64,000 bases of DNA from the IMG/VR virus record IMGVR_UViG_3300032240_001991, positions 124,001-188,000 of that record, one strand, 5' to 3'. The translations under genes and the position numbers were made by a program. The notes beneath the pieces are model-generated. The model was not told the DNA's origin. It ran no database searches and saw only the letters and a list, made by a program, of their open reading frames with translations. Positions 45,324-64,000 of the stretch are shown here, in pieces (the stretch's first letter is position 1; each line of letters begins with the position of its first letter).

Positions 45324-46052
45324 ATGTCAAAACCTAATATTCTTATACCTATGGCAGGATTAGGATCCAGATTCCTGATGAAGGGATTTAGTATCCCAAA
45401 ACCCTTGATTGATATCAATGGTACTCCTATGATTATTAAAGCCATTAGGAGCCTTGGGATAGAAAATGCAACTTACCTATTTGTAATATCAAAAAATGCT
45501 TATACTGAACATATTAAAAAAGAAATATCGGATTCAGTAAATTCTCAATTTATAGAAATTGACTATTTGACAGAAGGCCCTGCTTGTTCAGCTCTTCTTT
45601 TTGAATCACAGATTGATAATGACCAAGAACTTATTGTTGCTAATTGCGATCAGATTATGGAATGGAACGCAGAATCATTTTTGCTTAATGTTCGGCAATA
45701 TGACGGTGCAGTTGTTACATATCATGAAACTACCGATAAAAATAGCTATGCTAGAATTGATGATAGAGGATATGTAGTTAGTATTAAAGAAAAACAGGTA
45801 ATAAGCAACATATCATTAAATGGTGTCCACTATTGGAAAAAAGGTCGCTATTTCGTAGAAAGTGTTAAAAAAATGATTGAGATGGACGATCGAGCACCCA
45901 ACGGCGAATTTTACGTAGGCCCTACTTACAACTACATGATACAAGAAGGTAAAAAGGTAGGAATTTATCATATCCCAAATCAGATGCATCATGCCGTGGG
46001 TGTTCCCGAAGATCTTCAAAAGTATATTAATCACGAGAGAAATAAAAAATGA
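45324..46052 (+). CDS. sugar nucleotidyltransferase-like protein
   Basis: PMAGLGSRF, PKPLI, NCDQ, NGEFYV. Confidence 0.8.
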   Translation: MSKPNILIPMAGLGSRFLMKGFSIPKPLIDINGTPMIIKAIRSLGIENATYLFVISKNAYTEHIKKEISDSVNSQFIEIDYLTEGPACSALLFESQIDNDQELIVANCDQIMEWNAESFLLNVRQYDGAVVTYHETTDKNSYARIDDRGYVVSIKEKQVISNISLNGVHYWKKGRYFVESVKKMIEMDDRAPNGEFYVGPTYNYMIQEGKKVGIYHIPNQMHHAVGVPEDLQKYINHERNKK

Positions 46053-47242
46053 AATTTTTTAGAGATAGATCAGAGATAAAAACTGATCAATATTTTATTG
46101 CTACTTTTCAAATGTCAAGCTCTAAATCACTTAAAGCAGCTGCATGGGATTTAGCTATAGGACAAAGTGTAGGAAATCCTCATGTGAGAAATCGCTGGGA
46201 AAATGATGAGTTGTTTGAAAAGCATAGTTGTATTATTTTAGGTGATGAAAACTATTTAGAAACACTTAAAGCGGGTCTAGTGGAAATTGCGTATCCTGTA
46301 GAAAATACTGATTGGGACACTGACGGTATTTCTCATTTGCTTTGCCAGGTTATGGGAGGTCATGTTGATATTGACATTATTACTAGTTGTCGTTTAGTTA
46401 AACTTGAACTTCCTAGTACTGTTACAAACCATTTCTTTGGCCCTAAATACGGATTTTCTGGAATACGTAAATTAACTGGACAATATAATAAACCACTGTT
46501 TGGCGCAATCATTAAACCTAAAACTGGAATGAGGCCCGAAGTTTTACTAGAAATGGTTAAAGAATTAGTAGACGGCGGTGTTGATTTTATTAAAGAGGAC
46601 GAAATTATGAGTAGTCCTTCTTTTTGTCCATTATATCGTAGAGTAGACTTAATTTCAAATTATCTAGCAAAACAGAGTCGTAAGATCGTATTCTGTCATA
46701 CTATTAATTGCGATCCTCATATACTTATGGATCGTGTAAAAATAATACATCAGCTAGGCGGAACAGGTGTGCATATTAATGTATGGAGCGGATTAGGTTC
46801 TTATAATAGTATTAGAAAATTAGACTTACCTTTATTCCTACATTTTCAAAAGAGTGGTGATAGAACATTTACTGACGCCAGTCATAGATTTAGCATCGCA
46901 TGGCCAGTTATCTGCCAGTTAGCTACACTTATGGGTGTAGACACAATTCAAGCAGGTATGATTGGAGGGTACAGCAACGACGACGAAGTTGAACTAAGGC
47001 AGTCATTGGAAATTTTAAGGAAAGGAAATACCGTTCCTGCATTAAGTTGCGGAATGCATCCTGGGCTAGTTAACCATGTGTCTGATCTTGTTGGTGTAGA
47101 TTTTATGGCCAATGTTGGCGGAGCTGTTCACGGACACCCTGGCGGAACTATTGCAGGGGCACGCGCAATGAGACAGGCAATTGACAAAACTTTTGAATCA
47201 GAGTATCACGAAGCAATTAACAAATGGGGACTAATAAAATGA
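46049..47242 (+). CDS. RuBisCO-like protein (form IV-type)
   Basis: GPKYG..GIR, IIKPKTG, GGVDFIKEDE, SCGMHPG, GGAVHGHPGG..AGARAMRQA. Confidence 0.9.
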   Translation: MKFFRDRSEIKTDQYFIATFQMSSSKSLKAAAWDLAIGQSVGNPHVRNRWENDELFEKHSCIILGDENYLETLKAGLVEIAYPVENTDWDTDGISHLLCQVMGGHVDIDIITSCRLVKLELPSTVTNHFFGPKYGFSGIRKLTGQYNKPLFGAIIKPKTGMRPEVLLEMVKELVDGGVDFIKEDEIMSSPSFCPLYRRVDLISNYLAKQSRKIVFCHTINCDPHILMDRVKIIHQLGGTGVHINVWSGLGSYNSIRKLDLPLFLHFQKSGDRTFTDASHRFSIAWPVICQLATLMGVDTIQAGMIGGYSNDDEVELRQSLEILRKGNTVPALSCGMHPGLVNHVSDLVGVDFMANVGGAVHGHPGGTIAGARAMRQAIDKTFESEYHEAINKWGLIK

Positions 47243-50194: not shown

Positions 50195-50278
50195 GGGTAG
50201 CGAGTAGCATTGGCGACTACAGCTGATTGTAAATCAGCCGCTTTGGCATACGGGGTTCGACTCCCTGGCTACCCACCA
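50195..50278 (+). tRNA. tRNA-Tyr(GTA)
   Basis: GGGTAGC/GCTACCC acceptor, GCTGA-TTGTAAA-TCAGC, long variable arm, TTCGA, CCA. Confidence 0.9.
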
Positions 50279-50363
50279 GTCACGTGAACTGTGATGTGTA
50301 ACACAGTATAATCAAACACGGCAGGATTGGCAATGACCTGCTAAAATAAGCATGCTAGATGGT

Positions 50364-50438
50364 AGACATATGGTGTAACGGTAGCACGCACCCAATTTTT
50401 GGGCGCGCCGAGGTGAAGGTTCAACTCCTTCTATGTCG
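50364..50438 (+). ncRNA. tRNA-like element or degenerate tRNA
   Basis: GACATA/TATGTC acceptor, D-arm GTGT..GCAC, T-arm GAAGG-TTCAACT-CCTTC, abnormal anticodon arm, no CCA. Confidence 0.6.
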
Positions 50439-50473
50439 TGCGGATAACCATCAAATAAAAAACCGCACTTTTT
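50438..50473 (+). terminator. putative terminator
   Basis: GTGCGG/CCGCAC stem with a large loop then TTTTT. Confidence 0.5.
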
Positions 50474-50493
50474 AAAAAATAAATATAGAAATT

Positions 50494-51600
50494 ATGATAC
50501 TATTATCTAACGTTAAAATTACTAATATTCCACTTTATCCTTCTCCTAATAGACATTTACTTCGAGGTAAACTTTTTACTAATCCAGACAGAATGGATAT
50601 TTGGAAATATACGTTAGCAAGTTACGTTCCTTTAATGCCCCTCATAAGCAAAGTTATACTTTATATTGATCTAGCCACAACTGAATATGCAGGTCAGGAG
50701 CCCTTATTAGAGACTTATATAAGATCATTATTTCCAGAAGATAAATTGATTCTTCGCTGGTATAGAAACAACAGTACCGCAGATTGGCGTAGATCGTGTG
50801 AAGAAGATGTTTTTCCAATAGACGATGACTTAATCTTCAATCTAACAAACGATGATCATGTTTTTATTGATAAAAATTTAGATATCTTAAATGCGACTAT
50901 AAACCATTTGACTAGGTGTGAAGATCCTTATGCGCAAATTATCTATAGCCATTGGCCAGAAGTTATACGACACGCAGCTAATAACGGATTTCAAATTTCA
51001 GAAGATTTAACATGTGTTTATGGCAGGTTTCGTTCTATTGAAAGTTTTGATATAGTTAAAAAAGAAAGATGGCGACACTACTGGTTTGACCATGACTTTG
51101 GAGAGGCTAATAATGTTTTTCGACCAGATGAACATTTATGTGTTGCCGGAACTTTGCCACATGGTTCAACAGTTTTTTTTCCAATACGTGAATTGTCTAG
51201 GCACTTTGACGGATACGAATATGCTGGTGCTTTTATGAATTTAGCACCTCCATTAGATATTCCTCAAGGTTTCTTTGAAAAAAATATCAAAATAGCATAC
51301 GGCTATTCTGATCTTAAAGAAGGTTATACCAATATAAATCCATCATATCCTTACTTTAAAGCATCTACTGGAATTGGAATGGATTATAGATTTTCTTTAG
51401 AAGATATTCCTGCTGCATGGTTTGATAGAATTAGCGAAATAAGTATAAACCCTAACGCCGACTTAGAATATTTAAAAAAGTGTCGTGATCAACTTTATTA
51501 CGATATGGCGTGCGCCGATGCGCGAGGTCCGCATGTACAAGCAGTGACACATCCTTTCCCAAAAGAAATATTTAAAAATCAATTTTTATCAAAACAATAG
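50494..51600 (+). CDS. hypothetical protein (possible GT-A fold)
   Basis: 368 aa ORF, NDDH motif, TAAATA box upstream. Confidence 0.7.
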   Translation: MILLSNVKITNIPLYPSPNRHLLRGKLFTNPDRMDIWKYTLASYVPLMPLISKVILYIDLATTEYAGQEPLLETYIRSLFPEDKLILRWYRNNSTADWRRSCEEDVFPIDDDLIFNLTNDDHVFIDKNLDILNATINHLTRCEDPYAQIIYSHWPEVIRHAANNGFQISEDLTCVYGRFRSIESFDIVKKERWRHYWFDHDFGEANNVFRPDEHLCVAGTLPHGSTVFFPIRELSRHFDGYEYAGAFMNLAPPLDIPQGFFEKNIKIAYGYSDLKEGYTNINPSYPYFKASTGIGMDYRFSLEDIPAAWFDRISEISINPNADLEYLKKCRDQLYYDMACADARGPHVQAVTHPFPKEIFKNQFLSKQ

Positions 51601-51605
51601 TTTAT

Positions 51606-51681
<76 letters not shown>

Positions 51682-51685
51682 ATTT

Positions 51686-51759
51686 GCCCAATTAGCTCAA
51701 AAGTAGAGCGCACGACTGATAATCGTAAGACGGAGGAGCGTTACCTCCATTGGGCACCA
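51686..51759 (+). tRNA. tRNA-Ile(GAT)
   Basis: ACGA-CTGATAA-TCGT, atypical T-loop AGCGTTA, CCA. Confidence 0.85.
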
Positions 51760-51765
51760 ATTTAT

Positions 51766-51840
51766 GGGTCTGTAACTCAGAGGCAGAGTAGCCGCCTCTT
51801 AAGCGGTAAGTCGAGATTTCAAAATTCTCCAGACCCACCA
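51766..51840 (+). tRNA. tRNA-Lys(CTT)
   Basis: GCCGC-CTCTTAA-GCGGT, CCA. Confidence 0.9.
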
Positions 51841-51843
51841 ATT

Positions 51844-52575
51844 TTACCAATTGCCAAAATTACCAATACCTATGTTGTAGTTAAATTGACTATCTGGTGT
51901 TTGAATGTTGTTTTTTAATAAGTGCCATCCTAGCATACTTTCAGCGGTAATAGGGATTCCTTCTAGAGTATATTGATCAATGTAATCAAACACACTAGCA
52001 TATTTGCTCATTGTATGGCTTTCGCCAATAGCAAAATTATCGTTCACCGGATTTAAAGTTTGTCCTATGGGTACAAATCCTAATCTGCCATTTGACGGCA
52101 TAATTAAAGATTCCATAGACTGTTGCTGTAGCCATTCTTTTGCTCGATCTAAATAAATGTCTCGATCAATGGTACCGTCGGCTCTGCTGCGTATTACTAA
52201 ATCATATGCTCCAAAGATAGATTCGTATTTTTCTCTTATTTGATTTACAGATTTAATTCCATTATACATGGTCCAAACATTCTTTGGATTAGCAATGTCC
52301 ATTACATGATAGCATTTGTTACTATCAAACACTGGCATATTGACTATATCTAGGCTAGCTATAAAATGATTGTTTGGTAAACAGGATACTAACATTTGAT
52401 ATAGAGTTGATCGATCATTATTCCATTTTGGAGAAATTCTATTGTCGTGCTGGTGACTAGAACTCCATAAATAGAAGAACCAATCTACCTGATTATAATT
52501 TTTTAAATGACCTATTAAAGAATTAAAATTTTCTGTAAATCGAGGAAGTCCAGAAACTATGATTGCAACTTTCAT
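51844..52575 (-). CDS. putative glycosyltransferase-like protein, SGxPR family
   Basis: MKVAIIVSGLPRF, YDLVIRSRAD, NDNFAIG. Confidence 0.6.
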   Translation of the reverse strand: MKVAIIVSGLPRFTENFNSLIGHLKNYNQVDWFFYLWSSSHQHDNRISPKWNNDRSTLYQMLVSCLPNNHFIASLDIVNMPVFDSNKCYHVMDIANPKNVWTMYNGIKSVNQIREKYESIFGAYDLVIRSRADGTIDRDIYLDRAKEWLQQQSMESLIMPSNGRLGFVPIGQTLNPVNDNFAIGESHTMSKYASVFDYIDQYTLEGIPITAESMLGWHLLKNNIQTPDSQFNYNIGIGNFGNW

Positions 52576-53107
52576 GAATCTATTTAATGGCTATACAAAT
52601 AGTGTTGTAAAAAAATTCCAAGATAAGTTTGTTCAACCTATGGACTTACATTTTGATCCCAGTTTATTATTAGCAGAATATCTTAGAAGTAGACACATAG
52701 ATAATGTACCAGACTATTACGATACTTGGGAAGCGTATAATCAAGGATTCCATAATCATCATATCGAGTATAATGCTCCTTACCTACAAGTAGTTTGCAA
52801 ATTATTACAGCCTAAATTGAAATTTAATTATGTTTTATACAGAACTATTCCTCCCCGTACAACCCTATCATGGCACACAGACCAAGATTGTGCCACATGG
52901 TCGTATCATATTCCTCTTATGACCAATTCAGGGTGTTACTTTGCTACCGAAGTAAGCAATTACTCTTTAAGAAATTGTGGACAAATGTATAAAGTAAACA
53001 CACAAATTTTACATACGTTTTTTAATGCTGGGAATGAACCCAGAGTTCACTTGCATTTTATCTATGATTTACAAGGTAGATACACTAGCGGGAAATTTCG
53101 TAGATAA
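52559..53107 (+). CDS. 2OG-Fe(II)/aspartyl-asparaginyl beta-hydroxylase-like protein
   Basis: WHTD, HIPLMTN, HTFFNAG..PRVHL; start codon uncertain. Confidence 0.7.
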   Translation: MIATFMNLFNGYTNSVVKKFQDKFVQPMDLHFDPSLLLAEYLRSRHIDNVPDYYDTWEAYNQGFHNHHIEYNAPYLQVVCKLLQPKLKFNYVLYRTIPPRTTLSWHTDQDCATWSYHIPLMTNSGCYFATEVSNYSLRNCGQMYKVNTQILHTFFNAGNEPRVHLHFIYDLQGRYTSGKFRR

Positions 53108-53110
53108 TTT

Positions 53111-53184
53111 GCTCTCATAGTATAAAGGTATTACACCGCTTTGGTAAAGCGGAAACACAGGATCGATACCTGTTGAGAGCACCA
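53111..53184 (+). tRNA. tRNA-Thr(GGT)
   Basis: CCGCT-TTGGTAA-AGCGG, T-loop ATCGATA, CCA. Confidence 0.88.
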
Positions 53185-53193
53185 AACATCAAT

Positions 53194-53269
53194 GGTGACA
53201 GTAGATCAATGGTAGATCCCCGGATTGTGATTCCGGTCGTTGTGGGTTCAAATCCCATCTGTCACCCCA
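53194..53269 (+). tRNA. tRNA-His(GTG)
   Basis: encoded G-1, CCGGA-TTGTGAT-TCCGG, CCA. Confidence 0.92.
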
Positions 53270-53277
53270 AAAATAAA

Positions 53278-53353
53278 GCCCTTGTAGTGAAATGGATTAT
53301 CACGCTACTCTACGAAAGTTGTATTCTAGGTTCAAATCCTAGCAAGGGCGCCA
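53278..53353 (+). tRNA. tRNA-Arg(ACG)
   Basis: loop CTACGAA, TTCAAAT T-loop, GCCA end. Confidence 0.88.
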
Positions 53354-53359
53354 AATAAC

Positions 53360-53388
53360 TTGACATAGTAATTTATTGGTGCTATATT
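53360..53388 (+). promoter_or_regulatory. sigma70-type promoter for tRNA-Ser
   Basis: TTGACA-17-TATATT. Confidence 0.65.
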
Positions 53389-53412
53389 CATTTGTATAAT
53401 TATAAGATTAAC

Positions 53413-53502
53413 GGAAGCGTGGTCGAGAGGTTTATGGCTCTAGTCTTGAAAACTAGCGAAGGTTAATGCCTTCCGTAGGTTCAAATCCTACCGCTTCCGC
53501 CA
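53413..53502 (+). tRNA. tRNA-Ser(TGA)
   Basis: CTAGT-CTTGAAA-ACTAG, long variable arm, GCCA. Confidence 0.93.
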
Positions 53503-53976: not shown

Positions 53977-54456
53977 ATGAAAAAGGTATTAACTTTACTT
54001 CTAGTCTCATTGCCACTTAGTGCAATGTCCGCAGAACTTATATACGAGTTCAAAGATCCTGCCTTTAACGGTATAGGATGGAGCAGCCACGCTCTAACGA
54101 TTGAGAGTATTGAAAAAAGTCGCCGTGATTCTATCAAGGCAGAAAAACAGGCAGAGATAGATAAGCTAGCAGCAGAAGCAGCTAATACTCCGTTAAACAG
54201 ATTTATGGCTTTATTTCAAAGTCAAGTTTACGCACAATTAGCTACACAACTATCAAACAATTTATTTAAAAATAACTGTAACGCTAGTGATGGAACTGCT
54301 ATTCCAGGTTGTGTAAATCCAGTAACCGGTACGTTTCAACTTGATGGCAACACAGTGACTTGGCTCAAAGGTGTTGATAGTGTTACATTAACTGTAGTTG
54401 ATAGTAACGGTACTATTACTAAGATTGAAGTACCAATTGCTAGTTTTGCCTTTTAA
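53977..54456 (+). CDS. csgF: curli assembly protein CsgF-like
   Basis: signal peptide then ELIYEFKDPAFNG; adjacent to csgG. Confidence 0.75.
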   Translation: MKKVLTLLLVSLPLSAMSAELIYEFKDPAFNGIGWSSHALTIESIEKSRRDSIKAEKQAEIDKLAAEAANTPLNRFMALFQSQVYAQLATQLSNNLFKNNCNASDGTAIPGCVNPVTGTFQLDGNTVTWLKGVDSVTLTVVDSNGTITKIEVPIASFAF

Positions 54457-54459
54457 CTT

Positions 54460-55290
54460 ATGAATATACTACAAAAAATATTAATAGTTATCATGGCTGT
54501 AGGACTAACTGCATGTAATACCTTTAGGCCTTTGCAGAACCCTAACCACGGAAGCCAGGCTCGACCAGTAAGTGTAGCCGCTAAGGCATTTAGTAAGGTA
54601 CCAGCTCCAGCTGGTCCTCCAGTGATAGTAGCCGTATACGGATTTAAAGATTTAACTGGACAAAGAAAAAGCAGTAGCACAGTTAGCAGTTTTAGTACCG
54701 CAGTAACACAAGGTGCTGATGCTTACCTAGTTAAGACCATGATGGATGTTGGAAACAGTCAATGGTTTACTGTAGTTGAGCGTGTAGGTTTAGATAATTT
54801 ATTAAAAGAACGTCAAATGATCAAGCAGACACGCGAAATCTACGAAGGTGATAAAGCGCGTATGCTACCGCCTATGAGCCTCGCTGGTGTAATAGTAGAA
54901 GGTGGAATCGTTGATTATAACAGTAATATCTTAACAGGTGGCACAGGTGCACGTATGTTAGGTATTGGACCTTACACCAAGTACAGCCAAGACGTTGTAG
55001 TAATTAATTTACGATTAGTTAGCGTAAGTAACGGTGAAGTATTACTAAGCGTAACTATCGAAAAGAACTTATTGAGTACTAACGATAGTATCACTGCATT
55101 AAAGTTCTTTAATCAAAGCACAGAAGCTTTTGAATTTGATTCTGGACAGGCTTATAACGAGCCTGCCAATTATGCATTAAGATCTGCAATTGAACAAGGA
55201 GTTGTAGAGCTTATAAAACAAGGTGAGAAAAAAGGTTTGTGGAAATACAAATCAAAAGATAGTCCAATAACAGGAGAGGTTAAGAAATGA
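54460..55290 (+). CDS. csgG: curli secretion channel CsgG-like lipoprotein
   Basis: lipobox LTAC, VAVYGFKDLTGQRK, STAVTQG, WFTVVER.GL.NLLKERQ. Confidence 0.9.
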   Translation: MNILQKILIVIMAVGLTACNTFRPLQNPNHGSQARPVSVAAKAFSKVPAPAGPPVIVAVYGFKDLTGQRKSSSTVSSFSTAVTQGADAYLVKTMMDVGNSQWFTVVERVGLDNLLKERQMIKQTREIYEGDKARMLPPMSLAGVIVEGGIVDYNSNILTGGTGARMLGIGPYTKYSQDVVVINLRLVSVSNGEVLLSVTIEKNLLSTNDSITALKFFNQSTEAFEFDSGQAYNEPANYALRSAIEQGVVELIKQGEKKGLWKYKSKDSPITGEVKK

Positions 55291-56078
55291 GACAGTATAT
55301 CGCAGCAGCACTGATGATTGCTAGCCTGCCAGCGTTAGCAGATGTTACTCCAGTAACTCCGCCTGCAGCACCAACGATTCCCGTAACTGCTACGGTCAGT
55401 CCAAATGCTACAGCAGCTTTAGCTGAAGGTTCAACAAACAGTGTTTTTATTAATCAGTCAGGCGAAAATCCTAATGTTAATATTGAACAGACCGGTGCAG
55501 GTAACAAATTAGGAACTCAGGGTTCCCCAGTACTACTAAATGGTCGTGATCAAGTAGTCATTACTAAACAGGTTGGTAGCAACAACTCAGTTGCGCTATC
55601 TGTAACAAATGACACCACTGGTAACAATGTAGGTGCTACTACCGTAATTCAACAGATTGGAAACATGAACACTGTTGATGCAGCATGTGGCAACGGTACA
55701 ACCAGCGGCGGAGTTGGTCTAACCAACTGCCGTAACGCTAACTTAAACTGGAAATTTACAGGAAATTCAAACAGCCTGCAATTTCGCGGAACAGGTAATA
55801 ATGTTGATAGTGCCATTACAGTAAGTGGTAGCAGTAACAGCTTTGGTATTGATGCAGTTGGAAATAATCACAGCGAAACACTTATGGTTAGCGGTGATCA
55901 AAACTCCTTTAACATCAGTCAGAAGAGCACAGGTGCTGCAGGAAGCAGTGTATTGTTTGATCTAACAGGTACAGCTAACTCTGTAACTGTCAGCCAAGGC
56001 GGCAGTGTTGACAACGTGCTAAATGTTAGAAGCACAGCCAACACCGGCGTATGGAATATCAAACAAGGAAATCAATGA
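55287..56078 (+). CDS. curlin-repeat protein (CsgA/B-like)
   Basis: signal peptide, repeated Q.G..N and G.SN motifs. Confidence 0.75.
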   Translation: MRQYIAAALMIASLPALADVTPVTPPAAPTIPVTATVSPNATAALAEGSTNSVFINQSGENPNVNIEQTGAGNKLGTQGSPVLLNGRDQVVITKQVGSNNSVALSVTNDTTGNNVGATTVIQQIGNMNTVDAACGNGTTSGGVGLTNCRNANLNWKFTGNSNSLQFRGTGNNVDSAITVSGSSNSFGIDAVGNNHSETLMVSGDQNSFNISQKSTGAAGSSVLFDLTGTANSVTVSQGGSVDNVLNVRSTANTGVWNIKQGNQ

Positions 56079-57151
56079 AGTGGATAGCAGCAATTGCTAT
56101 TCTTTTTTCAGTATCGGCTCAAGCAAGTATTGGGTCAATAACTGATCTAAATGGTGCTGCCACGATTAAACGTGGCAGTGCTATTTTTACTGCTGCCAAA
56201 GGTGCAGCAATAGAACAAAATGATCGCGTTGAAACTAAAAACGGTAAAGTAAAAATTACCTTCAACGACGATACTACTGTAAGCGTAGCAGAGCATAGCA
56301 GCTTAATAATAGACGACTTTGTTTATGATCCTAAGTCTGGGGCCGGCAAATTAGGTCTTAAAGCAGCTGGCGGAACTGTTAGATATGTCAGTGGCGCTAT
56401 AGCTCACAAAAATCCAAACGCGGTTAATATTACTACACCAACTGCTGCTATTGCTGTTCGAGGAACAGACTTCGTAATGAGCGTAAATGAGATTGGTAGT
56501 AGTATGGTTATTCTTATGCCTAGCTGCGAGAATGGAGGATTAGGCGAAGTATGCACTAGCGGAGCAATTGATGTTGAAAGTGGTCCTAATACTGTTAGCA
56601 TGAATCGTCCTTATCAGGCAACGCTAGTAGAGTCAACTGGACAACCTCCAACTCCACCTATTACTGTAAATTTATTTGCTACACCTGTAGGAAATAATCT
56701 TCAAATAAGCCCACCAAAAACTGAATCAGGTCAGAACGTAGTTGCTGCCGCAAGAGCTGCTGCACAAGCATCTGGTGTTACAAAAAATAGCAATACTAAA
56801 GATCCTTCCCCCGAACAACAAGCTGTAGCAACTGCTGCTCCTGTAACTCCCACAGCAGAAGTACAAACAAATACCAAGGTGCAAACAACTGCACAACAAG
56901 AGATTGTGGTAACAGCGACTAAATCTAATAAGGATCCCTACCTATTAATAAAATGGGGAGATTCTGCGCAAACACAGCAGATTGGTTGGATATATGAAAG
57001 TATTAGTCCTAGCGGATTACATTACGAAAATGTTGATCTGCCAACTGATACTAATATTACTATCTGGGTTAGCCAAGACGGTGAAGGACACGGATATGCG
57101 TTTAGTCCATCGCCACAGGGAAGAATCAACATTATTCAAAGGTCAAACTAA
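56075..57151 (+). CDS. FecR-domain secreted protein
   Basis: signal peptide, F.DDT, IDDFVYDP, TPTAAIAVRGTDF. Confidence 0.85.
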   Translation: MKWIAAIAILFSVSAQASIGSITDLNGAATIKRGSAIFTAAKGAAIEQNDRVETKNGKVKITFNDDTTVSVAEHSSLIIDDFVYDPKSGAGKLGLKAAGGTVRYVSGAIAHKNPNAVNITTPTAAIAVRGTDFVMSVNEIGSSMVILMPSCENGGLGEVCTSGAIDVESGPNTVSMNRPYQATLVESTGQPPTPPITVNLFATPVGNNLQISPPKTESGQNVVAAARAAAQASGVTKNSNTKDPSPEQQAVATAAPVTPTAEVQTNTKVQTTAQQEIVVTATKSNKDPYLLIKWGDSAQTQQIGWIYESISPSGLHYENVDLPTDTNITIWVSQDGEGHGYAFSPSPQGRINIIQRSN

Positions 57152-57810
57152 TGAAAACTTTAATTTTTTTTATTTTTTTATTTTTTTGCTCTTATAGCTG
57201 GGCAGACGTTAATTCTATTAATGTTAACCAAACCGCTGGAAATAATAACTTAGTTACTATTAAGCAAAGTACAAAAAATAGTGCCAGTTCAAATTCAATA
57301 GACATAACACTACAAGGAGATTCAAATAATCTCAATATTTCTCAAAGTGATATGAACGTTAACGATAACGGAGGTCATGTTGCTGTACTTGATGTGCAAG
57401 GTAATTCTAATAACATAACTGTACAACAAAACAATCGTGGCGGATCAAATAGTGGTCATTCTACTGATAACACAGTAACAGGCAACGGTAATCAAGTGTC
57501 AATTACACAATCAGGAAATTTAGAAAAAAGTTTAGTTGAAAATATTCTTGGTGACAATAATATTACATCGGTTGAACAACATGGCGCAGGAATACATTAT
57601 GCTGATATCACATTAACTGGGAACGGCCACTCTGTAACTGTGTCTCAAAGAGACGAAGGAACACATAACGCTACCATCAACTTAACTAATGTAGGAGGAT
57701 CTAGTACAGCAACCTTAGTACAGACTGGAAATACTCCTCAAACTATAAGTATAGAACAACAATGTGCAAATTTATCAGGTTGTTCAGTAAACGTAACTCA
57801 GAGTCATTAA
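57151..57810 (+). CDS. curlin-repeat protein (CsgA/B-like)
   Basis: signal peptide, G..N...I.Q repeats. Confidence 0.75.
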   Translation: MKTLIFFIFLFFCSYSWADVNSINVNQTAGNNNLVTIKQSTKNSASSNSIDITLQGDSNNLNISQSDMNVNDNGGHVAVLDVQGNSNNITVQQNNRGGSNSGHSTDNTVTGNGNQVSITQSGNLEKSLVENILGDNNITSVEQHGAGIHYADITLTGNGHSVTVSQRDEGTHNATINLTNVGGSSTATLVQTGNTPQTISIEQQCANLSGCSVNVTQSH

Positions 57811-57811
57811 C

Positions 57812-59854
57812 ATGAAGAAAATATTACTTAATCCGTGGTGGTCACTTTTAACATTAGTAGCCATTGTGCTGGTTAGAATTTGGGATCCTAGTTTTGTTGA
57901 AAGCGTAAGATTAAGATATTTTGATCAATTAGTTACAAGTCGTCCTACTACAGAAATTCCGGTCAATGTTGTAAATGTAGACGAAGCTGCATTAGACAAA
58001 TATGGTCAATGGCCGTTTAGTAGAGATGTGTATGCTGATATAATTAAGGAGCTTTACGCTAGGAACGCAGGTCTAGTAGTTTTTAACGTACTGATGCCCG
58101 AGGCCGATCGTTTTAAGCAAGATGCCGTCCTCAGCAAAACCATGCAGGAATATCCTGTGGTACTACCCACACTAGGCAACAATAAGCAGAAAAATACTAG
58201 CGTAATAGCTCCAGCTACTGTAATAGGCGCTGATCCAAAAGGATTAGTTGCAGAATATCCTGGATTGATCGCTAATGTTCCTGAACTAGAACAGGCTGCT
58301 GTGGGTGTAGGAGTGGTTAATACTTTTCCTGAAATTGACGGCGTTGTTCGTCGTACTCCGTTAGTAATTTATAGTCAAGAGCATTTGAGACCAAGCCTTG
58401 CCCTAGAGGTGTTGCGTGTAGCAGCAGGGGATGCGGCTTTTCAAATCAAGCTAGACGAGAACGGCGTTAATGCTTTACGTATTCCTCAATTTGGTAAAAT
58501 AACCACAGACAATATAAGTAGAGTCTGGATTGATTGGAGTCAACGCCCAAAGAGTTATAGTCTCGCTAATCTTCCTAAAGATTTTAATAAACAGATTGTT
58601 ATAGTGGGTGCCAGTGCGGCAGGTATTGCTAATCCTGTAGCGACTAGTCGAGGTGAAATTTGGCCTCAAGATTTACAAGCATCAGTTATTGGAACTATGC
58701 TAGCCGGTTCTACCATTCAACGACCTGCATACGCTGACGCTTTAGAATTAGGCGTTCTAATTACGGCTGGCATTATATTAATTGTATTAGCAAGGTGGTT
58801 ATATGTAGGTATTGTGGCTACAGTAATTTTTGCTGTTGGCGGTGTATTAGGTAGTATGTATGTTTATCAACACTATCTATTTTTATTTGATGCTACTACT
58901 TTTACCGCAGGCATAATCTTAATTGCATTACACGCTTACATGGTAAAATTTCTAGATGAGTTTTTTCAGAAGCAAATGATTAGAAAACAATTCCAAAGTT
59001 ATCTAAGTCCAGACCTAGTCGCTAAACTAATTAAAGATCCAAGCCTACTAAGATTAGGTGGTGAAGAAAAAGAATTGAGTATTATGTTTACTGATGTTCG
59101 TGGGTTTACTGCAATTAGCGAACACTACGGTAAGAATGTACAAGGGCTAACGTCTATTATGAATCGCTATATGACTGCAATGACTAAAAGAATACTAGAG
59201 AATGACGGAACTCTAGACAAATATATTGGCGATGCTCAAATGGCATTTTGGAACGCTCCGCTTGATGAATCTAAGCACTGCAAAGATGCTGTTAAAAGTG
59301 CCTTAGATATGTTAGGAGACCTAGAGAAATTTAACAAGGAAGTTGAACTAGAAGGTGTTCCTCCTTTTGGTATGGGTATTGGAATTAATACCGGTGTAGT
59401 TGTAGTAGGTAATATGGGGTCTGAACAAAGGTTTGATTATACCTGCTTAGGTGACGCAGTAAATCTTGCTAGTAGACTTGAAGGACAAAGCAAAAACTAC
59501 GGTGTCCTAATTGTATTAGGCCCGGTTACTGCTGATCGTGTTAAAGACGAATACCAAGTTATAGAACTTGATTGCATTGCAGTCAAAGGAAAAACACAGG
59601 GTGTAAACATATTTACTGTGTTAGGTCCAATAGGTTGCGTAAGTCAAGAAGATGTAGACTTGCATAATCAAATGCTGTCTTATTATAGGGCAACAGATTT
59701 TAATACTGCAATAATATTATGTAATTCGTTAAAAGGAAAACTTAACGGATTAATGGATCAGTATTACGACATGTGGATGCAACGTTGCGAAGATATGAAG
59801 TGGACTACCTTATCAGAAGACTGGGACGGAGTATATCGAGCTACTTCAAAATAA
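57812..59854 (+). CDS. CHASE2-domain class III adenylate/guanylate cyclase
   Basis: GQWPFSR CHASE2, TM helices, FTDVRGFT, DKYIGDA, GDAVNLASRLE. Confidence 0.93.
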   Translation: MKKILLNPWWSLLTLVAIVLVRIWDPSFVESVRLRYFDQLVTSRPTTEIPVNVVNVDEAALDKYGQWPFSRDVYADIIKELYARNAGLVVFNVLMPEADRFKQDAVLSKTMQEYPVVLPTLGNNKQKNTSVIAPATVIGADPKGLVAEYPGLIANVPELEQAAVGVGVVNTFPEIDGVVRRTPLVIYSQEHLRPSLALEVLRVAAGDAAFQIKLDENGVNALRIPQFGKITTDNISRVWIDWSQRPKSYSLANLPKDFNKQIVIVGASAAGIANPVATSRGEIWPQDLQASVIGTMLAGSTIQRPAYADALELGVLITAGIILIVLARWLYVGIVATVIFAVGGVLGSMYVYQHYLFLFDATTFTAGIILIALHAYMVKFLDEFFQKQMIRKQFQSYLSPDLVAKLIKDPSLLRLGGEEKELSIMFTDVRGFTAISEHYGKNVQGLTSIMNRYMTAMTKRILENDGTLDKYIGDAQMAFWNAPLDESKHCKDAVKSALDMLGDLEKFNKEVELEGVPPFGMGIGINTGVVVVGNMGSEQRFDYTCLGDAVNLASRLEGQSKNYGVLIVLGPVTADRVKDEYQVIELDCIAVKGKTQGVNIFTVLGPIGCVSQEDVDLHNQMLSYYRATDFNTAIILCNSLKGKLNGLMDQYYDMWMQRCEDMKWTTLSEDWDGVYRATSK

Positions 59855-59855
59855 A

Positions 59856-60152
59856 TTACTTATTATCTTCTCGGTTAATGCGCATTTCAGCTTGAATACG
59901 TTCTTTCTCAATGCGTTCGCCTCGCAATTGCAAAGCTGTTTCTACTTTTTGATTAAGTCTTATCATATCGTTATCTAGCATACGAATACGATCAATAAGA
60001 GCAATAAGTGTTCCCATAGCTTGATCAACAACAGGAGCAATTTCGCTAGTAGCCCAGGTCCAGACATAATAAACAAAGTATCCCATACCGCCTGCTGCAA
60101 TAATAGGAAATCCGTATTGATTAATTGCTTTTACTAAAGATGTTCCGTCCAT
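59856..60152 (-). CDS. small membrane/coiled-coil protein
   Basis: YGFPIIAA TM; LIDRIRMLDND. Confidence 0.7.
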   Translation of the reverse strand: MDGTSLVKAINQYGFPIIAAGGMGYFVYYVWTWATSEIAPVVDQAMGTLIALIDRIRMLDNDMIRLNQKVETALQLRGERIEKERIQAEMRINREDNK

Positions 60153-60157
60153 TTTAA

Positions 60158-60436
60158 TTAATCCTTACGTTGGTCTGCTTGATCTGCTCGAGCAATACGA
60201 TTAAAATCTGGCTGTAACCCTAATGCATGACTAACCTTTACATCAATACGATGTAGATCATTATTCATTGTATCTACTCGAGTATCTAACCCTTTAATAA
60301 TATTACCCATGCTGCTAACACTAGACGTTACTCCGGCTAGAATAAATTTAAGAGTAAGGAATACAAAATAGCCTGCTGCTAGAGCCGCAGCAATTGGAAA
60401 CCCAACATCAGTTACTATACTTAAAAATTCATCCAT
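60158..60436 (-). CDS. small membrane/coiled-coil protein, paralogue of 59856
   Basis: VGFPIAAA TM; LDTRVDTMNND. Confidence 0.7.
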   Translation of the reverse strand: MDEFLSIVTDVGFPIAAALAAGYFVFLTLKFILAGVTSSVSSMGNIIKGLDTRVDTMNNDLHRIDVKVSHALGLQPDFNRIARADQADQRKD

Positions 60437-60565
60437 TTTTTATTTCCTCTAAATATTTACCAAGGTTTGAAAGGTTTAAAAATTGGTATAAAATAGATTG
60501 CAATTTAAATTGAAATAAATTAAACTTGGTATATATTCATAAATATTTACAAATAGGAAACATTT

Positions 60566-61153
60566 ATGAGCATGTTAGACATTTTCAAAAAAGATAAAGT
60601 TGCAGAACAGGTTAAAAAAGTAGAAACCGTAATTGAAAAAGACGTCAAGAAAGCAGAAAACTTTGTTCAGACGGAAGTTAAGAAAGTAGAAAACTTTGTT
60701 CAAGCTGAAGTTAAAAAAGCAGAAACTGAAGTTAAGAAGGTAGAAATGGTAGTTAAAGAAGCTGTGTTAGACTTTGAAAAATTGCTTAGTGAAGCAGAAG
60801 TAATTGCTGAGAAAGCGATGAAAGACGTTCACATGGCTAGAGCACTTTACGAAAAAGCATTAACCCGTGCATCAACTGCTGCACAAAAAGTAAAGGAAGT
60901 GGCAGAAGCACATGCCAAGTATGCACAAGAACAGGCAGACAAAGCACTACTTCGAGTTGAACGTGCTAGTAAAATGGCACTAACTGTTAGTGGTGGCATT
61001 CCTGAAATTCCAAAGTTAAATTCTGAGGATATTGTATATTCACCTACTCCTGCGGTTGAGTCCTCTGCTCCGCAGCCGGCAACTGTACCAGTTAGTACAC
61101 AAACACCAATGGTACTAAAACTCGATAATTCTACACTTACTATTAAAGCATAG
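60566..61153 (+). CDS. amphipathic helical repeat protein
   Basis: VKK(A/V)ENFVQ(T/A)E 11-aa repeats, Ala-rich helix. Confidence 0.7.
   Translation: MSMLDIFKKDKVAEQVKKVETVIEKDVKKAENFVQTEVKKVENFVQAEVKKAETEVKKVEMVVKEAVLDFEKLLSEAEVIAEKAMKDVHMARALYEKALTRASTAAQKVKEVAEAHAKYAQEQADKALLRVERASKMALTVSGGIPEIPKLNSEDIVYSPTPAVESSAPQPATVPVSTQTPMVLKLDNSTLTIKA
60644..60745 (+). repeat. 33-nt coding tandem repeat
   Basis: gt.aagaaag.agaaaactttgttca twice plus partial copies. Confidence 0.65.
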
Positions 61154-61177: not shown

Positions 61178-61699
61178 ATGAAGAGATTACTAGTTTCTGT
61201 TGTATTGTCCTTAATTCTAGTTAGTTGTGGAAAACCTCCTCCGCCACCTGCTGCTACTGTAGATTTAACCGTTCCCTATTCTAGTGCAGACGACGCAGCC
61301 GTTGCTATGCTGCAAATTGCTATGAGTGAAACTAAATCTAGTGATTACGAATACGGCGGATTTGTTGTCGTTAACGGTGACAAGTATTATGCATCTCTTC
61401 CGGTAACAGATAAAGATACAGATAGAGTTGATTACATTGCAAAAGTTCCGGCAGACTATAAAATTGTAGCAATTTATCATACTCACCCTAAGGGATTTAA
61501 ATCTGAACAGTATTCAGGTGTTGATGTACAGACTTCTAAAAATTTACAAGTTAACAGCTATCTTGGTGTAATAGCTGACAGATCTATTAGAATCTTTATT
61601 CCCGGATTTACATCAACCTTTGCTGACGACCCTGCCGCTAATGGGGGCGTTGGACTTGGTTCTTACGGAACGATCATAGCCTCATATATTAAGAAATGA
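61178..61699 (+). CDS. lipoprotein with a JAB/DUF4329-like domain
   Basis: lipobox LVSC; EYGG, YHTHP, S..D. Confidence 0.7.
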   Translation: MKRLLVSVVLSLILVSCGKPPPPPAATVDLTVPYSSADDAAVAMLQIAMSETKSSDYEYGGFVVVNGDKYYASLPVTDKDTDRVDYIAKVPADYKIVAIYHTHPKGFKSEQYSGVDVQTSKNLQVNSYLGVIADRSIRIFIPGFTSTFADDPAANGGVGLGSYGTIIASYIKK

Positions 61700-62172
61700 C
61701 CAGGACTGAAAAGAAGGTGGCGGCCTTCGCTGGAGTTTTAACAGTAGTTGGTTATTTCTTACCGCTTCACCTTTATCTTACTCCTAAAAAAGATTTAGGT
61801 TACGCTCTAGGATGGGCCGGAGCTATTATGATGACTTTACTATTTTTATATAGCATTAAGAAACGTGCAACTTGGGGATGGTTAGAGCGTACACCAATAC
61901 TAAGAAAATGGTTTGATATACATATGCTTTTTGGTATTTTTGGACCAATTAGCATTCTATATCATTGTGGTTACCAATTAGGAGCAACCAACAGCAATAT
62001 GGCCCTTTGGTCTATGATTATAGTTGCAATAAGCGGATTTATAGGCAGATTCCTTTATCATCGAACAGGCTGGGAAATTCTATTTAAGTGGTGGCACATA
62101 GTGCATTTACCTTTTGTAGGGATGCTAGTTTTAACAGCAATCATACATATTTTCTCAACATTCTATTATTAA
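61696..62172 (+). CDS. inner-membrane protein with His-bearing TM helices (porin-cytochrome cluster type)
   Basis: GYALGWAG..MM.LLFLYS.KKR, WFDIHMLFGIFGP..ILYH, WWHIVHLP. Confidence 0.7.
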   Translation: MTRTEKKVAAFAGVLTVVGYFLPLHLYLTPKKDLGYALGWAGAIMMTLLFLYSIKKRATWGWLERTPILRKWFDIHMLFGIFGPISILYHCGYQLGATNSNMALWSMIIVAISGFIGRFLYHRTGWEILFKWWHIVHLPFVGMLVLTAIIHIFSTFYY

Positions 62173-62225
62173 TGTACATATATTATCCTATAAATAGATA
62201 AAAATCTGTCTATAGAGGGAATATT

Positions 62226-64000
62226 GTGACGCCACAGGCTGTAATAGATTCTACAAATTTTAATGATCTATTTGATGATTTAAATTTTACATCTACTCTG
62301 AACAGCCTATTGGATAGTGATCTTGGTGTTCAAGATACGCTTAATAAATTAAAAACTCAAAAAGTATTACCTAAAGAAAATCTTAATTCTTTATTAGAAG
62401 AAAATAAAGTTATAACAGATAAAACAGTATTTGTTACAAAAAAACCGCAAAAGAAAAGTAAGACTTTATCTAGGTCAATTGCAGTTATATTAGGGTTAAC
62501 ATCTTACGCCGGATATTTTAATTTTAATAATACAGAGCTAGTATCTATACCTGTACCTACTCCAGCAGAACAAAAAAAAACTAATCAAATACCTTTTAAG
62601 TTTACTAAACCAATTGTAGAAAATACTCGTACAACAACTCATATTGGTCCTAAAGATATTACTTCTATAGAAACAACAGATAATACTCCAGAACTAGTTC
62701 AGCCTACGGTCCAAGAAACTCAAGAAGATCAACAACCAAAAATTTTTTTAGATACTCGAGATCCTCAAATATTAATAGACGAAGCTAGAGCATTATTAAT
62801 TAGTGGACCTGAAAATTACGAACAAGCAATAACCAATTTACGAAGTGTTATTTTAAGTCAACCGTTAAAAAGTGATTACGCAAAAACTGCACACGAAATG
62901 TTAGGATACGCCTACGAAAAATCAAAAAAGTGGGATAAAGCAATGGGAGAGTATTCTAAGTATCTTGCACTTTATCCAGAAGATAACGAAGATAGAACTA
63001 GAGTCAAACAAAGACTAATGGCGCTAGAAATTTTTAAAACTCCTGAAGGGTTTGATATTAATAAAAGCGCAATAAAACAAAAACCAAGAGAAGGCGATAA
63101 ACAGGAACTAAGTGGTTCAATTTCAGAGTATCTTTACTCAGATTCAAACTCAGATGAATTGAAATTCCTGCAATGGAACAATAAACAGATTAATTCGATT
63201 ACTGGAATTAATCTATTATATCAATGGCAACATAATCAATATTCTCTTACATCTAAAATAAGATTAACAGAAGTAAGAGATTTAACCGGTAAGAAAGGAA
63301 ATAGGAATAATTTAGGATTAGCTTATGTTGATTTTGACGATTCTTGGAAAGAGTATAATATAAGAGCAGGAAGACAATCTCCCGAAGCAGGTGCAATAAG
63401 TAAATTTGATGGTCTTTCTACAACAATTTCTTTAAACGATAAAATTAAAATTAAAGCTGCTGCTGGATCCCCTTACGTTGGCCCAGGAAACAACACAAAT
63501 AGAAAATTTATAGGAACAGAAATATCATACGAACGAGGACCATCTTTAACTCTAGGTGGATATTTAAATAGAGGAACTGCAGATGGATTTTTAGAACGAA
63601 TGGCAATTGGCACCGAAGTATGGTATCATAAAGGAGCAAATACAGGAATTCTAAGAACTGAATACGATACCTTATACCACTCATGGAATTCTATAACTTT
63701 TCAAGGAAGTACAGGAGTTAAAGGATATCGTTTATTTGGTGTTTATGAAAAAAGAAGAAGCCCAATGCCATTTGGAGACGTTGGATTAGGAATAGGATTA
63801 TTAAGTCCTGATAAACAGGTATATAATTCAGTAGGAAGTTTGGTCAGTGAATCAGGATTAAGTTCTTCAGAGATCTATCATTACATTTCTGATACAACCC
63901 CAACTGCTTCAGCTTTGGTATTAGGTATTAGTAAGCCTTTAAATGAAGATTGGACCGCTACTTTTAATTGGCAGAAAACAAATTTATCAACTACACCAGG
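62226..64000 (+). CDS. large TPR plus beta-barrel porin-like protein (partial, not in the ORF track)
   Basis: open from GTG 62226; AHEMLGYAYEK...EYSKYLALYPE...RVKQRL TPR; SGSISEYLY, AGRQS...KFDG, EYDTLY. Confidence 0.65.
   Translation, partial: MTPQAVIDSTNFNDLFDDLNFTSTLNSLLDSDLGVQDTLNKLKTQKVLPKENLNSLLEENKVITDKTVFVTKKPQKKSKTLSRSIAVILGLTSYAGYFNFNNTELVSIPVPTPAEQKKTNQIPFKFTKPIVENTRTTTHIGPKDITSIETTDNTPELVQPTVQETQEDQQPKIFLDTRDPQILIDEARALLISGPENYEQAITNLRSVILSQPLKSDYAKTAHEMLGYAYEKSKKWDKAMGEYSKYLALYPEDNEDRTRVKQRLMALEIFKTPEGFDINKSAIKQKPREGDKQELSGSISEYLYSDSNSDELKFLQWNNKQINSITGINLLYQWQHNQYSLTSKIRLTEVRDLTGKKGNRNNLGLAYVDFDDSWKEYNIRAGRQSPEAGAISKFDGLSTTISLNDKIKIKAAAGSPYVGPGNNTNRKFIGTEISYERGPSLTLGGYLNRGTADGFLERMAIGTEVWYHKGANTGILRTEYDTLYHSWNSITFQGSTGVKGYRLFGVYEKRRSPMPFGDVGLGIGLLSPDKQVYNSVGSLVSESGLSSSEIYHYISDTTPTASALVLGISKPLNEDWTATFNWQKTNLSTTP

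Follow-up and report, generated by a model that had tools for sequence, protein, structure and literature searches.

A 327-kb freshwater jumbo phage carries a reduced version of the bacterial PCC3 gene set, consisting of an inner-membrane protein predicted to bind two haems, a predicted outer-membrane barrel and two small multi-haem cytochromes. Because this set is thought to carry electrons across the cell envelope, phages may rewire how infected cells exchange electrons with iron or other outside substances. Electron transfer is inferred rather than shown, and no function has been demonstrated experimentally for PCC3 in any organism (He et al. 2017, PMC5566968).

Genomic setting and gene content

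The stretch of DNA analysed (the window) comprises 64,000 nt, positions 124,001 to 188,000 of the 326,658-bp IMG/VR virus record IMGVR_UViG_3300032240_001991. The original prediction, made from sequence alone, placed possible PCC3-like porin-cytochrome components at the end of this window, in a phage. The phage origin was confirmed by a large terminase, a T4-type portal (E 3e-108) that is ~50% identical to those of the jumbo phages PA5oct, Phosso and Erwinia SNUABM, 31 tRNAs, a tmRNA and many PHROG matches. A search for the tail sheath (PF04984) found none, and among deposited phages the only near-identical DNA was a tRNA-Ser. The marker amoC was sought, to see whether this is one of the recently described amoC-phages, and was not found, but the control genomes gave no signal either, making this result uninformative. 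The features of the locus are as follows, where L001 denotes the locus extract and G000 the whole record.

60467..60537 (+): two promoter-like sigma-70 sites (L001 467-494 and 510-537; 10 of 12 matches each) ahead of the first + strand gene of the block, a possible operon start; these are consensus matches only, and the region does not hold clearly more such sites than shuffled sequence.
60566..61153 (+): 195-aa coiled-coil or repeat protein (VKKVE repeats), first gene of the co-oriented block; a homologue (47% identity to L020 2562-3017) lies about 600 bp from the inner-membrane protein gene in a related 328-kb phage (L020), although whether it belongs to the module is uncertain.
61178..61699 (+): 173-aa DUF4329 lipoprotein (PF14220, E 2e-10; lipobox LVSC) of unknown role, whose stop overlaps the next start by 4 nt; a DUF4329 gene lies 4 kb upstream of the inner-membrane protein homologue in another phage contig.
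61696..62172 (+): inner-membrane protein (IMP), 158 aa, five helices, with WFDIH-x13-H (aa 72-90), SGFIG (aa 113-117) and WHIVH-x13-H (aa 133-151); a predicted di-haem b-type cytochrome and PCC3-type IMP lacking a ~125-aa loop.
62226..62753 (+): N-terminal extension of the barrel protein, with a ~80-aa conserved N-terminal segment, a hydrophobic helix at aa 80-98 (nt 62463-62519) that probably acts as a signal-anchor, and a Pro/Thr/Gln-rich disordered linker up to aa 176.
62754..63041 (+): TPR domain of the barrel protein (aa 177-272, five helices), similar to BamD/YfiO (BamD Z 12.4-12.9).
63096..64000 (+): first part of the predicted 22-strand outer-membrane beta-barrel (aa 291-729), cut by the window end; the gene continues to G000 188415 (L001 4415).
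Beyond the window, L001 4406-4935 (G000 188406-188935): 5-haem cytochrome, 176 aa from the ATG, with a signal peptide, four CxxCH motifs and one Cx4CH motif; its start overlaps the barrel stop.
Beyond the window, L001 5001-5807 (G000 189001-189807): 7-haem cytochrome, 268 aa from the GTG behind a GGAG site, with a signal peptide and seven CxxCH motifs.
Beyond the window, L001 5821-5844: terminator-like hairpin with 9 pairs (7 G-C) and a T-rich tail.

The observation itself proved correct, with two amendments. The membrane protein does contain WFDIHM, ILYH, WHIVH and IHIF, but hydropathy and the AlphaFold2 model give five helices (3-21, 34-55, 69-90, 98-122 and 127-157) instead of the four described. 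The statement that no CxxCH protein lies in the window is true, as no ORF of 60 aa or more in the window has the motif; however, two multi-haem genes begin about 0.4 and 1.0 kb beyond its end. The long ORF described next to the membrane protein starts at GTG 62226, with a GAGGG Shine-Dalgarno 6 nt upstream, and runs 415 nt past the window, with 591 aa inside it and 729 aa in full. Its TPR helices (aa ~177-272) are followed by 22 predicted beta-strands (aa 291-728), mostly at pLDDT >90. The atypically long N-terminal extension is also real, residues 1-171 being disordered except for the helix at 80-98. Homologues of the barrel protein occur in a short form with a classical signal peptide and a long form with this extension, some with a zinc ribbon.

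These features exceed chance. The four haem-ligand His and the SGxxG serine and glycines of the IMP are invariant in 14 aligned homologues, and all seven CxxCH motifs and six further His are invariant in nine aligned 7-haem homologues. The genes are under purifying selection (dN/dS 0.07-0.23), and there are no internal stops. Barrel and 7-haem genes are adjacent, with different flanks, in all 16 other phage-type loci read, comprising 13 IMG/VR loci (several near-identical), two ENA contigs (not searched over their whole records) and one locus read without DNA. The IMP gene is adjacent in a different gene order (barrel, 7-haem cytochrome, IMP) in two of the related loci (L015/L016) and is present elsewhere in two further records, but one 95%-complete relative has no IMP, and candidate IMPs near the module in two other loci (L003 and L004) proved on alignment to be unrelated proteins. 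In trees the phage copies form separate clades on long stems (support 100 for the barrel and 84 for the IMP); the nearest bacterial neighbours are unresolved, and no donor or host can be named from these trees. None of 50,697 deposited phage genomes encodes a homologue of the barrel, the 7-haem cytochrome or the membrane protein, whereas the module is not rare in lake metagenomes, where at least 35 distinct barrel variants were found, and it occurs in phage contigs of 178-330 kb.

Relationship to bacterial PCC3 and other porin-cytochrome systems

The interpretation of the locus as PCC3-like was supported, with corrections. Three outcomes had been named in advance as grounds for rejecting it, namely homologues unrelated to cytochrome clusters, absence of a predicted barrel and host misassembly, and none of them materialized. 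The best non-phage homologues of the barrel, the membrane protein and both cytochromes sit in bacterial clusters ordered IMP, 21-haem multi-haem cytochrome (MHC), 11-89-haem MHC and porin, which is the PCC3 arrangement of He et al. 2017 (PMC5566968). The 22-strand barrel is predicted with high confidence. An independently assembled 8,184-bp contig covers 6 kb across all junctions with no differences at even depth, and a second sample holds pieces of all four genes. The multi-haem cytochromes, which were to be looked for in the adjoining sequence, were found directly after the window.

PCC3 as defined by He et al. 2017 (PMC5566968), and surveyed in Gallionellaceae (PMC10734462), includes an IMP of about 300 aa with five helices, SGXXG on helix 4 and WX3HX13H on helices 3 and 5. 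The phage IMP has exactly these motifs and this helix order, but its length falls outside the definition (158 aa against ~290) through loss of the ~125-residue loop between helices 4 and 5. It is 42-43% identical over 92-106 aa to IMPs of two bacterial-looking metagenome contigs with PCC3-type clusters (E 8e-23 and 5e-21), and tblastn gave 42-57% identity to the 80 best of 162 bacterial relatives, which were found with one peptide pattern. The original prediction had tied the family to iron-oxidising Betaproteobacteria, but it is not specific to them, the closest bacterial copies retrieved being mostly in Steroidobacteraceae and other Gammaproteobacteria MAGs. Membership was judged through bacterial clusters, including those of MAGs, that fit the published description, and the reference cluster of Sideroxydans lithotrophicus ES-1 was not aligned directly.

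The barrel belongs with PCC3 porins, with which it is collinear (TPR plus barrel) and 22-27% identical over 400-557 aa (E down to 2e-24), the alignment beginning at the TPR domain. The signal peptide plus N-terminal domain of the bacterial porins are replaced by the extension with its internal hydrophobic helix. Both phage cytochromes resemble one repeat unit of the extracellular PCC3 cytochrome; the 7-haem protein matches the N-terminal unit and repeats of the bacterial second MHC at 27-42% identity and E down to 5e-26. The extracellular PCC3 cytochrome, however, has many haems (10-89, median 34; 10-35 in Gallionellaceae), while each phage protein has a single unit and its cellular location was not examined, so that the comparison does not decide whether either fills this role. 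The periplasmic cytochrome of about 21-27 haems is lacking, which departs from one defining feature of PCC3. The whole phage genome has only two multi-haem ORFs, these match the 21-haem proteins only weakly (E ~1e-4), and the 21-haem protein of a bacterial-type cluster (L026) found nothing in five related viral records, a search that had no positive control. A bacterial counterpart of this minimal set exists in a Methylococcales MAG (L073), which carries IMP, 7-haem MHC and porin without a 21-haem gene nearby.

The proposed working principle, a multi-haem cytochrome threaded through a large beta-barrel, is that of the MtrCAB, MtoAB and PioAB complexes (structure 6R2Q). Structural matches of the barrel are to 22-24-strand lumen-filled barrels and to MtrB (6r2q_B, Z 13.9), a generic barrel similarity. 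Pfam and NCBIfam searches gave no hit to MtrB/PioB or to decahaem MtrA/DmsE families, so that membership in this group is not indicated; the barrel has 22 strands rather than 26, the cytochrome 7 haems rather than 10, and the inner-membrane partner is a b-type protein, not a CymA/NapC-type tetrahaem c protein. The barrel is not a Cyc2-type fused cytochrome-porin, as its ORF has no CxxCH motif.

The IMP was compared with di-haem transmembrane cytochromes b, as was also done by He et al. Two helices each carry two His with 13-residue spacing, the geometry that holds two stacked b haems, and the top Foldseek matches are FdnI of formate dehydrogenase-N (1kqf_C), cytochrome b561 and the ferric reductase/NOX domain. 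These matches point in the right direction but are not significant (E 0.3 or higher, none reaching E 0.001), Pfam and NCBIfam leave the IMP unassigned, and a PDB search with the IMP profile found no sequence relative, leaving its placement in any of these families undecided.

Other mobile elements considered were the Borg and jumbo extrachromosomal elements of Methanoperedens (PMC12660748; PMC13444090) and the group C amoC-phages, with a NapC/NirT-family cytochrome (bioRxiv 10.64898/2026.06.18.733297). Borgs carry MHC genes. In each case a large mobile genome carries respiratory multi-haem cytochrome genes as auxiliary cargo, but those are archaeal elements, or single host-like genes nearly identical to the host copy. 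Here a bacteriophage carries a set of membrane protein, barrel and cytochromes that has diverged far from any bacterial copy.

Proposed function and alternative readings

The explanation favored, with a probability of roughly 0.6, is that the locus is a phage-borne, miniaturised PCC3-type porin-cytochrome module, which would be transcribed as one + strand unit ending at the terminator just past the window. The analysis establishes that four genes homologous to bacterial PCC3 component genes lie in a genuine jumbo phage, form phage-specific clades and are under purifying selection with every haem ligand conserved; the mechanism that follows is inference, resting on analogy with MtrCAB-type complexes. 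In this view, the IMP binds two b-type haems between helices 3 and 5 through His76/His90 and His137/His151 and exchanges electrons with the quinone pool of the infected Gram-negative host. The 5-haem cytochrome would be exported by Sec, matured by the host's cytochrome c maturation system and act as a periplasmic carrier, while the 7-haem cytochrome would be sheathed by the barrel and carry electrons through the outer membrane, with the TPR domain and tethered N-terminal extension helping to dock or assemble it. Transfer between the quinone pool and extracellular partners was not assayed here and its direction was not established, nor was the host identified. With the 21-haem subunit missing, how electrons would cross the periplasm is open. 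No RNA run holding the locus was found, leaving expression untested, and a predicted complex of the barrel (aa 285-729) with the 7-haem protein (aa 47-273), modelled without haems or controls, gave an ipSAE of 0.01, which is evidence neither for nor against binding. The result might be a cheap, quickly built path between host respiration and extracellular iron, humic or other redox partners that sustains energy supply during a long jumbo-phage infection, and where the host has its own PCC3, the phage parts may also work together with its 21-haem subunit.

A less likely alternative is that the phage proteins are add-on or replacement parts that dock onto the host's own PCC3 machinery; for example, a single-unit mimic of the host extracellular cytochrome could, with a phage barrel, redirect, boost or block the host's electron flow. 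Both phage cytochromes correspond to the N-terminal unit of the host-type extracellular MHC, which is probably the part next to the porin, the 21-haem subunit is missing, and some relatives lack the IMP or the 5-haem protein. However, the phage supplies its own barrel and, here, its own IMP, so that three of the four component kinds are present, the free-living Methylococcales MAG has the same minimal set, and it is not known whether the host has PCC3.

It is unlikely, though possible, that the module changes the envelope for a purpose other than respiration-linked electron transfer, such as superinfection exclusion or receptor masking by a new surface complex, periplasmic redox buffering or detoxification, or haem or iron handling. 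The genes sit in a block of envelope genes (CsgG/CsgF curli-type secretion, a curlin-repeat protein, a FecR-domain protein, a CHASE2 cyclase and a lipoprotein), and phage morons often alter the cell surface. Such roles, however, would not need strict conservation of all seven c-haem sites, the four b-haem ligands and the quinone-side membrane protein, and all homology found is to electron-transfer clusters.

An exopolysaccharide or protein export channel of the PgaA/BcsC/PelB/AlgE type, incidentally placed beside the cytochromes and serving the phage's many glycosyltransferases, is very unlikely. Although the TPR plus barrel architecture is similar and AlgE is among the Foldseek matches, these have TM scores of 0.4 or less, which is generic, Pfam and NCBIfam gave only TPR hits and none to these exporter families (PgaA, BcsC, PelB, AlgK/AlgE), sequence homology is to PCC3 porins, and the barrel is adjacent to the 7-haem gene in every locus read. 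An assembly chimera, host contamination or decaying cargo, suggested by an odd CheckV completeness of 36% and a drop in GC to 0.32 in the last 2 kb of the window, is the least likely, given the independent contig, the recurrence of the module in other phage contigs, the long-stemmed phage clades and the purifying selection described above.

Implications for phage and PCC3 biology

Phage auxiliary genes are known for photosynthesis, sulfur, nitrogen and methane metabolism, but full-text literature searches found no report of a phage-borne porin-cytochrome module. PCC3 is widespread in bacteria and has never been characterised because its cytochromes are huge. The phage version (158-aa IMP, about 445-aa barrel domain, 5 and 7 haems) is a natural minimal form, small enough for heterologous expression and structure determination, so that the long-open question of what PCC3 does becomes testable.

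A further reading, which is tentative, is that a lineage of freshwater jumbo phages installs its own complete, minimal trans-envelope electron conduit in the infected cell, consisting of a di-haem b membrane protein, a 5-haem periplasmic carrier and a 7-haem cytochrome in a 22-strand barrel. This would give or boost extracellular electron transfer (iron or humic reduction, or Fe(II) oxidation) during infection, making extracellular respiration a virus-encoded trait and providing the smallest natural porin-cytochrome system known. If the module is functional, viruses would directly take part in iron and humic redox cycling in stratified waters.

Phage context of the locus

The window corresponds to bases 124001-188000 of a single contig of 326,658 bp that is held in IMG/VR as a virus record (here G000). 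This contig encodes a large terminase (PF03237, E 2.7e-19) and a T4-type portal (PF07230, E 3e-108), the nearest cultured relatives of which are found in jumbo phages of Pseudomonas (PA5oct), Sinorhizobium (Phosso) and Erwinia, at about 50% identity. It also carries 31 tRNA genes and a tmRNA, and many ORFs of the window match PHROG families. The contig is therefore a jumbo phage, and the original prediction was right to place the genes in a phage. Both contig ends (G000 1-100 and 326559-326658) lie in collagen-like GPx-coding repeats, which probably broke the assembly; CheckV rates the record 36% complete, while a 328-kb relative with the same module is rated 92%. The tmRNA gene is permuted (two-piece), with tag ANDDVYAMELAA, and matches Rfam beta_tmRNA at 130.6 bits (gathering score 84) and tmRNA_permuted at 148 bits, which is a weak hint that the host is a betaproteobacterium.

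Because the second ORF of interest runs off the window, the next 16 kb were also read (L001, in which coordinates equal window coordinates minus 60000). The module and its surroundings are as follows.

G000 121241-121629 (about 2.4 kb before the window start; L105 434-815 in a separately read stretch): permuted tmRNA gene
Window 1977-3350: nicotinamide phosphoribosyltransferase (PHROG 448, E 2e-166), NAD-salvage cargo typical of jumbo phages
Window 46049-47242: 397-aa protein matching the RuBisCO large-chain catalytic domain (PF00016, E 1.4e-35), among glycosyltransferase and methyltransferase genes; it may be a RuBisCO-like protein
Window 50195-53502: array of eight tRNAs, about 8-11 kb upstream of the module
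Window 53977-54456: CsgF (E 7e-11)
Window 54460-55290: CsgG (E 6e-48), followed in the list of neighbours by an unassigned 263-aa protein
Window 56051-57151: FecR-domain protein
Window 57151-57810: protein with a weak curlin repeat
Window 57812-59854: CHASE2 adenylate/guanylate cyclase
Window 59856-60436 (- strand): two small paralogous proteins (98 and 92 aa), each with one hydrophobic helix and a coiled-coil tail; they have no family match and may be holin- or spanin-like
Window 61696-62172: membrane protein (IMP), 158 aa
Window 62226 onward: barrel protein, 729 aa, starting at a GTG behind a GAGGG site
L001 4406 onward: first cytochrome, its ATG inside the last codons of the barrel gene, with four CxxCH motifs and one Cx4CH motif
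L001 4936-4985: AT-rich inverted repeat (TGTAGATTTT / AAAATCTACA), recognized by eye in the 50-65-nt gap between the two cytochrome genes, possibly an RNA processing or attenuation site
L001 5001 onward: second cytochrome, most likely starting at this GTG behind a GGAG site, with seven CxxCH motifs
14 nt after the second cytochrome gene: strong terminator-like hairpin
L001 5920-17404 (G000 189920-201404): array of 20 tRNAs beginning 113 nt after the 7-haem gene, the first of which is a 95-nt tRNA-Ile(tat) call
L001 6073-10288 (G000 190073-194288): two 2OG-Fe(II) oxygenases, an S-adenosylhomocysteine hydrolase (E 2e-130) and a sulfotransferase

The curli-type secretion genes and their neighbours lie directly upstream of the module and, together with the porin-cytochrome genes, make up a roughly 12-kb island of envelope genes, while the two tRNA arrays bracket the module.

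Components of the module

The observation on which the original prediction rested held: the ORF at 61696-62172 contains the histidine-bearing strings that it described, and the long ORF follows. It had also claimed that no CxxCH protein is present in the window, which was correct, as no ORF of the window has this motif, and it had named the adjoining DNA as the place where multi-haem cytochromes should be sought. That search gave the answer, since the barrel gene is followed directly by the two cytochrome genes, the only two multi-haem ORFs in the whole phage genome. Pfam places both proteins among c7/c3-type cytochromes, and the closest solved relative is a Geobacter cytochrome c family protein, 3ouq_A.

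The PCC3 inner-membrane protein was defined by five helices, an SGXXG motif on helix 4 and WX3HX13H motifs on helices 3 and 5, at a length of about 300 aa (He et al., 2017; PMC5566968). The phage protein has WFDIH-x13-H at 72-90, SGFIG at 113-117 and WHIVH-x13-H at 133-151, and its AlphaFold2 model has five helices in the matching order, so that the four membrane helices originally predicted were one too few. Two distant barrel homologues led by chance to two bacterial-looking metagenome contigs, L023 and L024, in which proteins of 298 and 318 aa with the same motifs sit next to cytochromes of 21-28 haems and a porin. The phage protein is 42-43% identical to these over helices 1-4 (E 8e-23 and 5e-21) and 30-40% identical over the last helix. 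Alignment showed that all 12 phage copies lack a block of about 125 residues between helices 4 and 5, whereas the four His, the serine and glycines of SGxxG and several other residues are invariant. Fold matches point to di-haem b cytochromes (FdnI, cytochrome b561, NOX) but are not significant. In both contigs the porin gene is followed by a ferredoxin/FAD-type oxidoreductase (L023 10689-12849 and L024 10244-11602), and in L023 a separate membrane-anchored TPR protein (a TPR_CcmH_CycH match) lies between the two; these are possible further components that the phage lacks.

Whether a beta-barrel is predicted at all had been named in advance as a point on which the prediction could fail. The AlphaFold2 model of the long ORF, built on 41 homologues, shows a disordered N-terminal region of 171 residues containing one hydrophobic helix (80-98), five TPR helices (180-270) and 22 beta-strands (291-728), mostly above pLDDT 90, with a conserved helical insert at 517-557. 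Its structural neighbours are 22-strand TonB-dependent transporter barrels (Z 16-17), 24-strand ushers (Z 16.5) and MtrB (Z 13.9), while the TPR part resembles BamD. Foldseek agrees that this is a large outer-membrane barrel of no specific solved family. Bacterial PCC3 porins align with the phage protein from the start of its TPR domain onward, so TPR plus barrel is a family trait, but they begin with a signal peptide and a domain of 130-250 aa. The phage family has either a short form with a classical signal peptide or a long form, as here, with an N-terminal segment of 80-110 aa (a zinc ribbon in some) followed by an internal hydrophobic helix. The long N-terminal extension that had been flagged as atypical is therefore real and is conserved in a subfamily.

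Bacterial counterparts, conservation and assembly

A scan of 185,579 species genomes with one peptide pattern from the IMP alignment found 162 relatives, of which the best 80 were examined. They are mostly MAGs of Steroidobacteraceae and other Gammaproteobacteria, although Emcibacteraceae, Methylococcales, Omnitrophota, Nitrospira and Planctomycetes also appear. Their gene order is strikingly uniform: IMP (~290 aa), a 21-haem cytochrome (~520 aa), a second cytochrome with 11-89 haems, and a porin of 700-880 aa, which is the PCC3 layout (He et al., 2017). The phage barrel matches these porins at 22-27% identity. Both phage cytochromes match the second, "extracellular" cytochrome at 27-42% identity, the match being to its first 200-240 residues and its internal repeats, and each phage cytochrome therefore corresponds to one repeat unit. 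Nothing in the phage corresponds to the 21-haem protein. One Methylococcales MAG (L073 9836-14489) has just an IMP of 316 aa, a 7-haem cytochrome of 218 aa and a porin of 718 aa, with no 21-haem gene in the 20 kb read, so a minimal set also exists in bacteria. The proposal that these are PCC3-like components in a phage, which would have been undermined by best homologues unrelated to cytochrome clusters, was thus supported.

Among phages, a word search found 35 distinct barrel clusters at 42-53% identity, on contigs of up to 330 kb. The barrel and 7-haem genes are adjacent in all 16 other phage-type loci read (13 IMG/VR loci, several of them near-identical, two ENA contigs and one locus read without DNA); a 4-5-haem gene usually lies between them, and the flanking genes differ from locus to locus. 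The IMP gene is adjacent in a different order (barrel, 7-haem, IMP) in two of the phage-type loci, L015/L016, lies about 68 kb away in the 92%-complete 328-kb relative, is present in another fragment, and is absent from a 95%-complete 178-kb relative. Phage barrels form one clade with full support on a long stem, and phage IMPs form one group (support 84), all of 149-165 aa against 244-413 aa in bacteria; no donor lineage is resolved in these trees. Pairwise dN/dS is 0.07-0.21 for the 7-haem gene, 0.08-0.23 for the IMP and 0.15-0.46 for the barrel, and all seven CxxCH motifs and six further His are invariant in the 7-haem family.

The possibility of a chimeric contig, also raised beforehand, was examined in the probable source sample, where one independently built contig of 8,184 bp covers L001 1-6000 without a difference and at even depth. 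A second sample of the same study holds near-identical fragments of the IMP, barrel and both cytochrome genes. Together with the recurrence in other phages, this excludes a chimera.

Proposed role in electron transfer

Literature searches of full texts found no report of a phage-borne porin-cytochrome cluster, and none of 50,697 deposited phage genomes encodes a homologue of the three proteins tested (barrel, 7-haem cytochrome and membrane protein). The nearest case is a host-like NapC/NirT cytochrome in amoC-phages; the present phage gave no amoC match, in a search that had no working control. What is new is the occurrence in a phage, with a shortened IMP, two small cytochromes and no 21-haem protein, of a cluster type that is already described from bacteria but is itself still hypothetical.

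The analysis itself demonstrates the homology, the phage context, the selection and the operon-like arrangement, whereas the role in electron transfer is deduced from the published PCC3 hypothesis and from the principle of MtrCAB. PCC3 has never been tested experimentally, no RNA data were found for the locus, and a structure prediction of the complex gave no verdict. In structure 6R2Q, a chain of 10 haems spans about 80 Å through a 26-strand barrel, and seven haems could therefore span an outer membrane. With the 21-haem subunit missing, the periplasmic step may be accomplished in one of two ways: either the 5-haem protein shuttles electrons, or the host's own parts are used.
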